A stretch of 64,000 bases of DNA from Utricularia gibba. Taxonomy: Eukaryota; Plantae; Magnoliophyta. Location: NCBI GenBank assembly GCA_002189035.1, contig NEEC01000007.1, forward strand, positions 434,001-498,000. The letters are read 5' to 3'. Below are positions 56,661 through 64,000 of the stretch, piece after piece (positions within the stretch are counted from its first letter, which is position 1; each line of letters opens with the position of its first letter). A program made the translations under genes and the position numbers. Under the pieces are notes generated by a model. The model saw only the letters and a list, made by a program, of their open reading frames with translations. It did not search any database and was not told the DNA's origin.

Positions 56661-57913
56661 TCAAGAGATGATGCCATTACTTAAGAAATTACTGACAATC
56701 TTGTTGAACTGGGAAGCGTTCTCCAGATGCGGAGTATGCCCAGTATTCTTGATCACTTCTAGTCTCGCCTTTTCCCCAGCCAACCTGCGATTCGAACATC
56801 ATCAGAATCTTCTCTTGGTTTTGAAGACGAGAAAGATTCATCCTAGCGAAATGTAGGACAAGAAAGAGGCGAGCATTCAAATGGGTCTTACTTGAGCAGT
56901 TCTGTGGTTTTCTCTAATAAAAAGATCTGATCTTGATCACCCCAGATGATGAGCACATCCTGTTTTCTCAGGAAGGAAAGAGATGAGCGATGCAAAAGAT
57001 CTGATCTTGATCTCCAAATGCAGTCATGAGAGTTGAGAGAGGTGGGAGACCTGGGAGAGAGGAGGTATGATGACATTTTCGTCATTTCCAAGGCTGAGGC
57101 CTTCCAGGAGTTCAGATTTCTCCTTCCTGTTCTCCATGTAGAGTTTCTGGATCCATTTCTCATGATTTTCACTCTTCGTTTGCTTGCAAAGGAAGCGGAA
57201 ATGCGCACGCAAAAAAAAAAAAAAAAGGGTACCTCGATGAAGTCATTGAGCAGGAATTCCGGCATATATGGAAAGCGGTGGACGGTTAGCCGGAGAACGG
57301 TACGCAACTGCGCGGCGGTCGCCGGCAGCAACAGTTCCTCCATATTCTTCGCTTTTCCCTCCTCATCAACCCCAGATTGTCGCTCAGCCGAAGATTAACC
57401 GCTGAGCTAGCGATAACTACTTTCTCCACCCTTTCTGGCCACATTTCGGCGATCCGGTACGACACGAATCCGCCGTAGCTAGTCCCGATCAGCGAGTATC
57501 TAGACATGAAATTGGTCGCGTAAGCAGCATTATGGCAGAGTTATTTGATTTAGTGAATACCTAGAAACCCCCAGCTTCTCGAGAAGTTTCGCGACGCAGT
57601 TCCCCTGAAAAACCTCTGACCTCTCCGACGAATTGGAGAAGGATTCGCCGAAGAAGACCAGGTCTGGGACGTAGACGTTGAATCTCGGTGCGAAAAAGGT
57701 GACCTGCGGCCGCCACTGCCAGATCCCCGCCGGCCCGAAGCCGTGAACGAGAACGAGTGACGGTTTGGAGGGCTCCGGGATCAGGGGACCCCAAAAGTGA
57801 ATAGTTGTCTCCCCGTCGATTTGGAGGTTCTGAGAAGTCAGTCCCGCCGCCACAACGGAGCGCCGGAGGAAACTACCATAGAGCGAAGCGAAGCTGAGGC
57901 AGGAGCCCGTCAT
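56661..57913 (-). CDS. Alpha/beta-hydrolase (abhydrolase_1/6 plant family), 5 exons; one apparent -1 frameshift
   Basis: HGFG oxyanion motif, VYVPDLVFFG, nucleophile GTSYGG, acid WGDQD, His in TGHTP; frame break at 57353-57359. Confidence 0.9.
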
Positions 57914-58064
57914 CGTTCACCTCACCTCACTGCCTCTGCGCGCGTGTTTCAGTTGGAAATACACTGCAACTGTAATCTCCATTATACACGTTGGTGGGCC
58001 CCCACCGGTTGGAATATTTGCGACTTGTCGTTTTCAACCCCGAAACAATTTCTATTTCATACAA

Positions 58065-58084: not shown

Positions 58085-58630
58085 AAGTCCCCTACCTTTT
58101 CTTCTTAATTTTATTTAATAAACATTATTTTTAATTTTTTTAAAATAAATCCCCTCCTATTATCCAGTGATCGGAATGGAATAACGTAAAATTATGAAAG
58201 TTCGATATACAGAAAGTATAGGAGAAATTTAAGTAAAGATGTAAAAATATTAGGTAAATCTTACATCACCTACAAATAGAATAAAGATACAATTTATGTA
58301 AAAAAATAATCTCTAATTTTGTATTCTCGAAAAGTAAGAATATAAAATCGTAAGAATTAAACATATAAAATCAATAATATCATACAAAAAAAAGAATGAC
58401 TCATTATATTTAAATTTTGTATTTTTAAAAAAAGTAATTTTGATATAAAAAAATATTTTTAATTTTCGTGTCTGCATAGGTGTGCGCATGGTGTCCTAAG
58501 CCTATCATCCTTTTGTTCGAATCCGGGTACGTGTAAGGTGAAAGACAATGAAAATGAAGGCCTGGTCTTCCTCCAGAACAAGTCTGGTAGTCTGTGAGGA
58601 TGAAGAAAGAGCGAGTACAAGCAGCATTCA

Positions 58631-61419
58631 TCACAACAGCCCTGCTTCAAACAAGTTCCTCCTCCTCAAGGTCTCGTGGACCAACTTGAAAGTCTTCTTC
58701 ACAAGCTTCTGATCCAACGCATTCGTTCTGTAGATCTTGAACACACGGTCCACGGAGTCCGGGCTCGTGCTTCGGAAGTACACTTCTTCGAATTTTTTCT
58801 TCACAAACCTAACAGCAAGCAAGTATAGATAGATATCTCAGAAGTTGGCCACTGGTTGTTGATGTCTAGAGCGGGGGAAAGTGCTTACTCGTATGCATGC
58901 TCAATTTCTTGTTTCCCTGCGGAGGCGGGCTGGTAATCTTTGAACCATTCGCAGACGCTTAAAGGCACCTGCATGTAGAAACCAGATGGTTGAGATGATG
59001 GAACATCTGGGATTGGAGGGAATCTGATGTGAACTTACTTTTGGAACCTTCCTCTCGAATAAGTCGAATTTGTTGAGAAACAACATGAAGGAAGTTTTCT
59101 GCGCAAGGAGCAGAGAGTGTTCAGTAGATGCATAACAGGGTTTTCTATGAGAATTATTTGGTGATATGGAACTGAACCTCAAAACATGGTTGCTTTAAGA
59201 TCCACTCAAAGAGCTCCTTCGTTTCCATCATACGGTTCTTGTCATCCTCGAGGAGAGTCTGATCATACCTGGGAGAATGCACCAAACAATAGTGAACTAA
59301 CTAATGGTGAGCAGATGACAACTTTTGCATGGTTCACCCAAAAGGGAATCAGGAGGGAGTTAGGGACTGTTACTCGCTTATGGCTGCACAGAATATGACT
59401 GCTGTAACGCCTTCAAAGAGATGAATCCATTTTCTTTTTTCATTTTTCTGGCCTCCAACGTCGAACAACCGGTATACTTCTCCACTTCTTTTATTTTCTC
59501 TGACTGGGCTGCACACCATGATACGTTAGTTATAACATTCAAATGCAGGAATAAACCAACGTGTGCTTGGAAGATAATGTGCTAAGCTGAAAAGAGAATT
59601 GCTGTACACCTGAACTGGATTTCAACAACACCGGTGGTCCGGACCCTGGCATAAAGAACATCTTCCTGCATATGTGATAAGAAGATTATCGTATTATTCG
59701 ACTATTGTATGTAGAATAAGTAACACTGTGCTAAATAGACAGCATTCTGAAGACTCTTTTTTCTTTATTCATGGAGTCCGTTAGGCTTTCAAGCTAAACA
59801 TATATCCCACAAAGTGAATAGACAGCATGCTGAAACCTGGGGCTTCTAGTTCTGTGGTACCTTTGTTGGAGTGTAAACAGGATTTGATAATCTTTGCAAG
59901 TTCTCTATGTAGTAATGTGCACAAGCTGGAACTTGAAGTTTGTTGCCACATGCGAGTGTTTCCTGAATGGCATCATCATGCCAAAGTGTCTCAATCTCAT
60001 CAGCAATTTCTGGAGTCAAAAATGGTAAATCCAATCTGCTACCGATCTCTGAGAGCCTCTCTCCAATTTCCTGTTAGCAAAAGCATTGAAGTCCATCTGA
60101 GTTACAAGAAGCAAGAATCTGTACATTTTTTCAACAATCCCTCTCTTGTTTATGTCATCTTTTTGTGCTTCAATGATACCAGAATTCTAATGTTTCTCAC
60201 AGGGTACATTCACTCTATTTACACCATGTACTTTTTCCATGCATACGTGACAGAGATTTTCCTAGAGTAATTTGTTTGTCTCTCCCAGAGACTTCTAGGA
60301 AGGTCATTTTGGCACCTCTCCCACCAAAACTCTAGAACTCAGAGCTAGGACAAATATCTTTGATAAAGAGTTTGTTCTGTAACAACTTTTGCTTTCTTCC
60401 TCACCATAGCTGGAGTTTGCAGAGGTGGCATAGCTGTTCACATCTACTAAAAACATGATGGAAGGTTTCCAAGTACCTTATTTTCATCAGACACAAGGAA
60501 CTTCGAGCCATCACTGAGACTTTGAGACAATTCCTTCGATCCATCGAAAAGTATCTGAAAACAAGGATCTAACTTGCATTAAGTTGAGAACCTCACAACT
60601 GCAACATGCATAGTTGCTCCTGCAAAAGGGAAACAACAAACACACCCCTTCATGTACATCATACTTTTATTGTCTGATATATGTTGGCATGAATGACTGG
60701 GATGTAGCTTTCCAGTTCAGCATCATCAAAACCATTCTGAAAAAGTAGTTTTATCTGCAAATAAACAAAGCCATTGTCTACTTAAAACATTGAAAAAAAT
60801 CATTACTCATGCCAGAGGAATAAAAAATTCTGGCACAACATACCTGCTTGAAGATGGTGGATTTTCCGGAATCACTGGAACCTAGAAACAGATGATGCGT
60901 GAAATATCAAGTAAAAGGGGATATCTGATATATAAAGGAAATGCTGCACCCAAGATGTCATATTTCGCAAGGAAATTCTATGAAAAAAGAAGCCTCCATG
61001 GAACAAGTAATAAGTCACATCACACCGAATAACAAAAGAAAAATAAGTACACCGGCCTTCCATCTGAAAACCAACCCCACCACCTTCTTGTTAGGACTGG
61101 AGTCAAAAACACAAGCAACGCAACTCCAGCCAAATCCCATAATCATTTACACAACCCCAAGATAGTAACTTGTTCACCAACAGTGGCACACCCATCAGCT
61201 GAAGGCGGAGACAAATACCTAGTAAAAGAAGTTTTTGAACGTGCTCCTCTTCTTTCGACTCCCTTTCAATCCGCTTCTCAATTTCTGCAGTCTAAAAACA
61301 CAAGCAGCCTTAATCCCACTCCATTAAAAAAGAATCATCGCTAAAAAACATAACTTTACCTGCTCAATCTCATCAGAATCCGCTCTCCAGTGCTGCTGCC
61401 TACAGCAGAGTGACCCCAT
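58631..61419 (-). CDS. GPA1: Heterotrimeric G-protein alpha subunit, 12 coding exons, divergent nucleotide-binding motifs
   Basis: MGSLCC acylation start, KLLLLG|, [30 protein letters not shown]-terminus [11 protein letters not shown]; all exons join in frame. Confidence 0.96.
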
Positions 61420-63129
61420 TATCGATTAACGTGCGAAGCGCAACATACGGTCAATGACGAGTACGGGATCGATCAGTGAACATTGCCAGCCAAAGAGAAA
61501 TGCAAGGACGGAAGTTAATAGAACCCAGGAGAAATGGTTAAAAGAAAAGGCGCATTCGTCAGCAGGAGGCGGGGAAAAGGTCAGCAAGGGCGGCGACGGT
61601 GGCCGGTGGGTGAGTACAGTGGGGGAATTGAATAGGTTTTTTTAGCACAGAGCGGAGTTCAGTGGCGAGGAGTGGATCGGATCAGCGAAAATATTTTGGA
61701 ATAAAAGGTTTTTAAAAGCTCTGACCAGTCAAATAGATGGTGACATACACACTAATGGCTCCACTTCAGAGCTCCACCGAATAATCTGGTAAGGCTCTTC
61801 AATGCAACTTTTTGCCTGGTAACACCAAATCGGATACCAGCTTTCAGACAAACCTTGTCTTTCATGCCTCCTCTCGTTTATGATCAGATGATTCTCTGAG
61901 AACGAGGAAAGCTACTCGAAAAAAAGGGAGTTTTTCACTAGCAAATCAATGAGGATTGGAGATCCTAAAGACTGAAGATACGGTCTATGCAGCAGTAAAG
62001 ATGGTCCATCGGCGCAAGAGCTGGGCCAGCCTCATAAGTCGGCCTGTAAGAATCTTTTCTCTGTCTCATTTGTTTGAAAAGAAACAGGAACTAGCAGGTT
62101 TCTCCCAAGTCTTTTCGCCATGGAATCAATTCCTTTGGAAAAGTTTCTAAGAATGATGGTCTTGTTTGATGAAACTTTTTGAGAAAAATCTTGTAGATGA
62201 TGAATTTATCATAGTCATTGGTGACCCAGAGAAAAAAGAGACCCAATCTCGTACAAATGGTGAATATCGTAGTAGCAGATGGAAGGGAAGATGCAAGAAA
62301 GGCAAGAACACAAGGGTGTGAAACCATTGCAAGTTAGTAAACTGGGGCGCTATTTACCGTCTCTACAGAAACACAGTCATTTTGGGGGGTGATTCCTGGA
62401 ATCCCTCATGAATTTATTCACACTTTCCGATACGTAACATGGGCATTTACTTGCCCAACTGCCAACTCCCCCAACTTTCTATTTTCCGGATCAAAATCAG
62501 ATCTTGCTGCTATTTACCATGGCTACACATATCCACTCCCCAAACCAATTTCTTCTTCCTTCCCATTTCTCCCTACATTCATAAATTGGGAAAGTGGGAT
62601 TTTGATATCTTGCCATGTGAATTCGTTACCCAGCTTCTGTGTTTTACTTTTCTTTTTACCCTTTTGTTCCCCCTTTCTGTGGCATTCTGCGCGGGTTCTC
62701 GCCCAGCTGCCACAATGATGGTGAACACAGACAGTCAGATCTGCCTCTCAGATGGACCCAACTCTTGGGAAGCTACTTCCCTTGTTCTTTCAAGGCATCC
62801 TTGATTCATAATCAGAAAAAAAAAGGATTTTTGTTTAACGGCCTGATGCTTCTGCGCCGATAGAAGCAATACAGAGAGCCATGATCCTGAAAAACACACT
62901 CGGGGGATTTTTGTGTTACCAATTCAAAAAATAAGTATATGAATTATATAATCATATAAGATTGATATACTTATGATAGTTAATTAAATAACGATTTATA
63001 CGTAAACTTAAATATGAATCTACTATATTGTAATATAAAATACCATGTAACTATTGTGACAACTATAAGGACAAGATTTGGGAGAGTTTCATTGGATATT
63101 ACTATGTATATAAGCTCACACAAAAAACC

Positions 63130-63460: not shown

Positions 63461-63499
63461 CCATATCTTCTCCGCCAAAATCCTTCATTCCACGCCGTC

Positions 63500-64000
63500 A
63501 TGGTAATGCTGATCTCTGCTTCTCCTGGGTCTCCGGCGGAAGATAATTCGCCGATGGAGGATAATCGTCTTCACTCTTCATTGGCGTCGACATCTGAATC
63601 TCCAAATCGCGCATCTCTCGACGGTGTCTTTTTCTCTGATTGGTTTTCCCAAGAAGATTGCAAAACTGAAGTTGTAAGCCACGTTTAATTCGTTTTTTGT
63701 TTCTTAGTATGGCGATTTTTTTTCATTTCTACGGTCGGTGTGGTGTTGACTGGTGTGCGCCGCCTATTTTCCGGCTTGTTTATTATTTGAATTGTATCAT
63801 ACGCCACCGCGTACAGATTTTTTTTTTCTGTTCGTTTTTGCTGATTATTATGTATGTGAAATTGACAGGGGGCTGGGCTCGAAAATTTGGGTAATACGTG
63901 CTTTATGAATTCGGTGTTACAGTGCTTCATGCATACAGTTCCACTTCTTAATCAAATCTTCTCAGATGGGCGGTGCAAGCATTCTAATTGTAAGTCAAGT
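63500..64000 (+). CDS. Ubiquitin-specific protease, UBP20/21-like, 5' part only
   Basis: Exon 1 ending EDCKTEV|GT; exon 2 Cys box [23 protein letters not shown]; truncated by the window edge. Confidence 0.9.

Follow-up and report, generated by a model that had tools for sequence, protein, structure and literature searches.

A G-alpha gene of the GPA1 type was found in a 64,000-nucleotide stretch of the genome of the bladderwort Utricularia gibba (positions 434,001 to 498,000 of contig NEEC01000007.1, assembly GCA_002189035.1), which is referred to here as the window. The P-loop of the encoded protein reads GSSDSGKS, with serine at residue 47. The P-loop glycine is among the most studied residues of GTPases, known from Ras G12 in cancer, from mutants of G-alpha-i1 G42, and from the natural exception G-alpha-z. 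The locus raises the question of whether a plant G-protein cycle has been rewired in convergence on G-alpha-z, as the initial annotation had proposed. Our preferred answer, to which we assign a probability of roughly 0.55, is that the gene is an expressed and selectively maintained GPA1 orthologue in which Ser47 is tolerated, has a modest effect, and was fixed in a fast-evolving lineage, and that it is not a demonstrated case of rewiring.

The P-loop of an expressed GPA1 gene

Three-frame translation and splice sites revealed a complete GPA1-type gene on the minus strand (58631-61419) with 12 coding exons encoding 382 amino acids. The reading frame is unbroken, all 11 introns are of the GT..AG type, and the residue numbering of the protein is that of Arabidopsis GPA1 (AtGPA1). 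The P-loop lies in exon 3, which on the minus strand from 60881 to 60844 reads (ag)GT TCC AGT GAT TCC GGA AAA TCC ACC ATC TTC AAG CAG(gt). Read on from the final G of exon 2, it encodes G45 S46 S47 D48 S49 G50 K51 S52, followed by T, I, F, K, and Q; the initial annotation, which had read this 38-nt exon as G-S-S-D-S-G-K-S, was right to the base when compared with the strand read and the gene model. Codons 46 and 47 are TCC AGT, compared with GCT GGA in the Lamiales relatives Genlisea, Sesamum, Paulownia, Erythranthe, and Olea, a difference at four of six bases (two apiece in the Ser46 and Ser47 codons) that agrees with the earlier description of multi-base codon substitutions. The two third-position changes among them are unremarkable, because the synonymous divergence (dS) on this branch is about 0.5. 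Residue 47 occupies the position of Ras Gly12, G-alpha-i1 Gly42, and G-alpha-z Ser42, adjoining the gamma-phosphate and the catalytic Gln. That G-alpha-z has serine at the equivalent of Gly42, as had been claimed, can be read from PDB chain 9md1_A (residues 35-57), which contains GTSNSGKS.

Transcript contigs from four public runs in three studies of the same organism were compared with the window over 58400-61600. The contigs of the four runs omit exactly the 11 introns of the model and therefore derive from spliced RNA. Exon 3 is found in them without any differing letter, and the canonical codons were not seen; differences elsewhere in the coding region are limited to two synonymous third-position changes, both from the third study. 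The gene is expressed, and assembly error and non-expression are excluded, because the transcripts are spliced and carry exon 3 unchanged. One run also gave a low-depth, 155-nt contig at 59664-59809 (exon 7 border and intron 6), which has one base inserted behind 59756 and probably stems from unspliced pre-mRNA or trace DNA in the library.

By motif scan, neither a second nor a tandem GPA1 copy was found within the 64-kb window. The possibility of a hidden alternative exon encoding a canonical P-loop was considered and rejected, as no other frame with G..[DEN]SGK[ST] occurs in the 64 kb. The features of the locus are as follows.

58631-61419, minus strand: GPA1-type G-alpha coding region (gene model; 11 of 11 introns backed by spliced contigs)
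58448-61600, minus strand: transcript contigs including untranslated regions (a 1,556-nt contig with introns removed; the 5' end reaches at least 61600)
61360-61419, minus strand: exon 1, starting MGSLCC; lipidation sites Gly2 and Cys5 retained
61219-61291, minus strand: exon 2; its last base (61219) opens the Gly45 codon
60844-60881, minus strand: exon 3, P-loop (G1 box) GSSDSGKS, 38 nt, with AG/GT borders
60877-60879 (S46), 60874-60876 (S47), 60862-60864 (K51), and 60859-60861 (S52), minus strand: codons of P-loop residues in exon 3
60665-60754, minus strand: exon 4 (gene model, spliced contigs)
60477-60554, minus strand: exon 5, in which the helical domain begins (gene model, spliced contigs)
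59861-60070, minus strand: exon 6, 210 nt, helical domain; a fusion of two exons that are separate in relatives
59610-59665, minus strand: exon 7, encoding switch I (RVRTTGV); Arg190 (catalytic), Thr193 (Mg binding), and Thr194 (RGS contact) retained
59374-59508, minus strand: exon 8, G3 box and switch II; Gln222 retained, R226K at 59436-59438, G205R at 59499-59501
59178-59268, minus strand: exon 9, 91 nt (94 nt in relatives)
59039-59098, minus strand: exon 10, G4 box NKFD (gene model)
58889-58968, minus strand: exon 11 (gene model, spliced contigs)
58631-58808, minus strand: exon 12 with stop codon, G5 box TNALD; D368H at 58676-58678

An alpha/beta-hydrolase-like gene (about 56700-57916, minus strand) lies downstream, approximately 0.5 kb beyond the 3' end of GPA1, and on the other side a ubiquitin-specific-protease-like gene starts near 63490 (63490-64000, plus strand). 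The close spacing of these neighbors fits a compact genome.

Descent of the gene and rarity of Ser47

The best matches of the window protein are the GPA1 proteins of Lamiales, at 80 to 83% amino acid identity (Sesamum GPA1, 83%), which are 90 to 97% identical among themselves. A maximum-likelihood tree places the window protein within Lamiales as the sister of Genlisea aurea GPA1 (support, 95/93), and no end branch of the tree is longer than that of the window protein (0.28; median, 0.057). Approximately nine derived residues are common to the window protein and that of Genlisea, among them G205R, where the column is 99% Gly, and because of these shared residues the pairing is not a product of long-branch attraction alone. 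High substitution rates in Utricularia have been documented (PMC4358910). The P-loop of Genlisea aurea GPA1 is the canonical GAGDSGKS. Besides G205R, the Genlisea protein (encoded on KE527014.1) has an R192Q replacement in switch I (ARVQTTG), at a position that we take to be the counterpart of G-alpha-i1 Lys180; judging from the aligned sequences, both Lentibulariaceae GPA1s are unusual near the switches.

Mapping of coding exons on the genomic loci of Genlisea, Sesamum, Paulownia, Erythranthe, and Olea revealed 13 exons of the same sizes in each, the 38-nt P-loop exon among them in all five. The window gene departs from these sizes at only two places, where an intron was lost and a codon deleted. 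The 210-nt exon 6 corresponds to the 108-nt and 102/105-nt exons of the relatives (their exons 6 and 7) joined, the intron between them having been lost in this lineage, whose genome is compact, and in exon 9 the window gene encodes EDDKNRM where the relatives have EDDNKNRM or EDDKKNRM. Tree and gene structure together indicate that the gene is the canonical GPA1 orthologue of this plant; with the 80 to 83% identity they bear out its original naming as GPA1.

The protein has all of the boxes of the G-alpha family: GSSDSGKS fits GxxxxGK[ST], and R190, T193, DVGGQ222, NKFD, and TNALD are present. The all-helical domain insert is present as well, as seen when exon 6 is compared with the helical-domain residues of AtGPA1; the best PDB match of this exon is AtGPA1 (2xtz_A, residues 86 to 154, 69 of 70 amino acids aligned, E=1.8e-22), followed by rice RGA1 and a Selaginella G-alpha. 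When the PDB was searched with the P-loop region, the best matches listed were G-alpha chains, with a G(z) chain at 27.2 bits. Against the Pfam G-alpha family (PF00503), with matches scored on single exons, exon 8 alone reached 52.9 bits (cutoff, 48.8) and the 70-amino-acid fragment from exon 6 reached 45.5 bits.

For a census of the P-loop, homologues were gathered by comparing exon 6 with a representative library and then by three word-index protein database searches, the queries being Andrographis GPA1, a Sesamum scaffold with the window exons, and a Genlisea scaffold with the window exons. The angiosperm GPA1 cluster representatives with a length of 340 amino acids or more numbered 142, and the P-loop was readable in 139 of them. 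Position 47 is Gly in all 139 (cluster representatives), and the residue pair 46-47 is AG in 130, TG in 4, SG in 3, VG in 1, and GG in 1. Set against these orthologues, the variant occurs in none of the other angiosperm GPA1s examined. All five Lamiales relatives that were compared codon by codon have GAGDSGKS, which indicates that Asp48 is ancestral in Lamiales and not new; position 46 varies elsewhere (A, T, S, V, or G), and G47S is the sole unique change in the P-loop. The initial annotation had taken GAGESGKS as the usual plant loop and GAGDSGKS as an occasional form; the second part does not hold, since GAGDSGKS was found in 50 of 129 full-length matches (47 of 117 real models). The canonical GAG(E/D)SGKS with Gly47, a trait of the GPA1 group, is absent from the window protein, and Ser47 leaves its membership among GPA1 orthologues intact, as the group is defined by descent.

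Two seemingly non-Gly P-loops, from Sesamum indicum (UNVERIFIED_CONTAM) and Castanea sativa (isoform X4), were rejected as mispredicted gene models with read-through at the 38-nt exon. In these models the exon is missed and the intron is translated, producing false P-loop variants in a careless census.

The word-index protein database searches returned no full-length GPA1 from the window species or close congeners. In profile ranking with hmmsearch the window protein would rank 36th with the Sesamum-scaffold profile and 3rd with the Genlisea-scaffold profile, and for this reason the database searched seems to be without a full-length GPA1 of the species or its congeners. A literature search for the motif string GSSDSGKS gave nothing.

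Selection and the competing explanations

Pairwise dN/dS (nonsynonymous to synonymous rate ratio, omega) between the window gene and its relatives was 0.05 to 0.16. A codon-model likelihood analysis with F3x4 frequencies (6 taxa, 382 codons) gave an omega of 0.080 for the background, 0.145 for the window branch, and 0.078 for the Genlisea branch, values that are rough at a pairwise dS of 1.1 to 1.6, near saturation. The likelihood-ratio test against a single ratio gave a p of 0.028, and that against omega=1 on the window branch gave a p of 3.6e-10. The gene is under strong purifying selection and is not decaying, and the mild rise in omega is particular to the window lineage.

Private replacements number 38 in the window protein and 21 in that of Genlisea. 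The 38 are distributed as 14 in the 122 residues of the helical domain and 24 in the 260 residues of the Ras-like domain. In the window protein 11 changes fall at columns conserved to 97% or more, the highest number for any sequence in the set. R226K in switch II, at a residue that is presumably the counterpart of G-alpha-i1 Arg208, and D368H in the C-terminal helix lie at columns that are Arg and Asp, respectively, in 119 of 119 other angiosperm GPA1s. S6C (61402-61404), which replaces the Ser found in 118 of 119 others, stands beside the palmitoylated Cys5 (MGSLCC) and may provide a second lipidation site. The other catalytic and nucleotide-binding residues are retained (K51, S52, T53, R190, T193, T194, D218 to G221, Q222, and NKFD).

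The reading that we prefer starts from GAGDSGKS, which would have become GSSDSGKS by A46S and G47S after the split from Genlisea. The protein presumably still binds and hydrolyzes GTP. The small side chain of Ser most likely disturbs the placement of Gln222 only mildly, resulting in somewhat slower hydrolysis, as is tolerated in G-alpha-z, which serves as an example that Ser at this position is compatible with a working, RGS-regulated G-alpha. A Stygamoeba G-alpha with GASESGKS counts in favor of such compatibility as well. The cycle of plant GPA1 is unusual in that the protein is self-activating and control is exerted at hydrolysis; because GPA1 is thus already hydrolysis limited, the net change to the G-protein cycle would probably be modest. 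G47S would then belong to a set of about 38 lineage-specific replacements that became fixed while the substitution rate was high and constraint slightly relaxed.

Several observations weigh against this reading. Glycine 47 does not vary in the other angiosperm GPA1s and hardly varies across G-alpha, and because of this near invariance substitutions there would normally be harmful; the effect of Ser47 may not be mild. In G-alpha-i1, G42V drastically cuts GTPase activity by displacing the catalytic Gln, and G42R leaves hydrolysis normal while the active conformation is not reached (PMC3285607), which shows that the effect at the P-loop glycine depends on the side chain. R226K and D368H, both at 100% conserved columns, could be parts of a coordinated functional change. 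The roughness of the omega values mentioned above also counts here.

Among the alternatives, adaptive rewiring comes nearest to the preferred reading, though we consider it rather unlikely. It would have Ser47, perhaps with R226K, markedly slow GTP hydrolysis or alter sensitivity to RGS1, such that G-alpha remains GTP bound for longer, in convergence on G-alpha-z and possibly in connection with a change in or loss of RGS1. The uniqueness of Ser47 among the 139 angiosperm P-loops, R226K in switch II, and the raised omega on the window branch are all consistent with it, as is the resemblance of three of the four variable P-loop positions to those of G-alpha-z (a hydroxyl, Ser, and D or N), and the G42V mutant demonstrates that the site is able to control GTPase activity. 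However, RGS proteins contact the switch regions, where Thr194 is retained, and the replacements show an even distribution along the protein instead of a cluster at the pocket. A GTPase rate of approximately 0.05 per min was reportedly found for G-alpha-z by Casey et al. in 1990. AtGPA1 and rice RGA1 hydrolyze GTP at 0.047 to 0.052 per min (PMC3386157), and because these canonical proteins are already slow, AtGPA1 at 0.047 per min being as slow as G-alpha-z, a G-alpha-z-like loop is not needed for a slow plant G-alpha and little room or need is left for convergence. Loss of RGS has not been reported in eudicots (PMC11061236). Thus, the sequence likeness to GTSNSGKS that had prompted the proposal of convergence stands, whereas the reasoning toward convergence is weakened by the slow canonical proteins, by the differing effects of side chains, and by the 37 other, spread-out replacements. 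The more specific form of the idea, a natural "Ras-G12S-like" bladderwort G-alpha in which Ser47 (with R226K) makes hydrolysis or RGS1-assisted shutoff markedly unlike that of other flowering plants and has coevolved with an altered or lost RGS1, seems to us improbable.

Relaxed constraint on the nucleotide cycle, by which the protein would be kept for nucleotide-independent roles as a scaffold or G-beta-gamma partner and would now tolerate changes in the pocket while its GTPase function drifts, is similarly doubtful. The 11 changes at highly conserved columns and an omega about 1.8 times that of the background are in line with it. An Arabidopsis preprint describes GPA1 mutants that are unable to bind nucleotide and nevertheless complement several developmental (morphology) phenotypes of gpa1 (PMC12879661), and XLG2, a relative of G-alpha in plants, is reported to show substantially reduced nucleotide binding, its nucleotide-independent interactions with its RGS protein and G-beta-gamma being kept (bioRxiv 10.1101/795088). 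Yet the omega of 0.145 is far below 1, and a single truly invariant pocket residue is altered, all the others that contact nucleotide or act in catalysis being intact.

It has also been observed in Arabidopsis that S49, S52, and T53 of the G1 motif of AtGPA1 are phosphosites at which phosphomimics abolish GTP binding or RGS1 interaction (PMC12879661). The added Ser46 and Ser47, which bring the hydroxyl residues of the loop S46-S47-D-S49-G-K-S52-T53 to five, might extend this P-loop target of receptor-like kinases and confer extra control of nucleotide binding. This proposal is purely inferential, Ser46 is found in other plants without a known role, and we regard new phospho-acceptors as a very unlikely explanation. 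An artifact or dead copy, whether by assembly error, pseudogenization, or duplication into an unexpressed paralogue, is the least credible of all, given the intact frame and canonical splice sites, the full-length spliced transcripts of three studies with identical exon 3, the rejection of omega=1, and the lack of a second P-loop exon or GPA1 copy within the 64-kb window.

Significance and comparison with known G-alpha proteins

The window gene is a rare natural variant of a well-known protein, and among the angiosperm GPA1s examined G47S is unique. A fixed and expressed Gly-to-Ser replacement under purifying selection constitutes a natural experiment on the weight of this glycine in a self-activating G-alpha, and it bears equally on whether selection on GPA1 still maintains nucleotide cycling. 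Normal kinetics would mean that plant GPA1 depends less on the glycine than one would expect from its invariance; altered kinetics would point to rewiring specific to this lineage, in a plant whose genome is minimal. Should the Ras-G12S-like idea be true, it would provide the eudicots with their first example of a rewired G-protein cycle.

The closest known systems are the plant GPA1s (AtGPA1, 2xtz; Genlisea aurea, M569_00991; Sesamum), with which the window protein shares 80 to 83% identity over the full length, the AtGPA1 numbering, the 38-nt exon, the N-terminal lipidation motif, the helical domain, the residues of switches I to III, NKxD, and the C-terminal helix. It differs from them in GSSDSGKS instead of GAG(E/D)SGKS, in R226K and D368H, in the lost intron and deleted codon, and in having the longest branch. 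A natural Ser at the third P-loop position is also found in a G-alpha of Stygamoeba regulata (EukProt EP00013_P029702; GASESGKS), a distantly related amoebozoan protein with 40% identity in the part that exon 6 matched. The mutants G42V and G42R of G-alpha-i1 and those of Ras G12 affect the same structural position as Ser47, but they introduce bulky or charged side chains into proteins with a fast baseline, whereas the window protein has a small Ser, naturally fixed, in a family with a slow baseline. G-alpha-z (GNAZ, PDB 9md1) resembles the window protein in its Ser at the place of Gly42, in the hydroxyl residue before it, and in the D or N after it (GTSNSGKS compared with GSSDSGKS). The two are related only by the G-alpha fold, the top matches and the tree placing the window protein outside the metazoan G-alpha-i descent, and the slow GTPase activity is a property measured for G-alpha-z.

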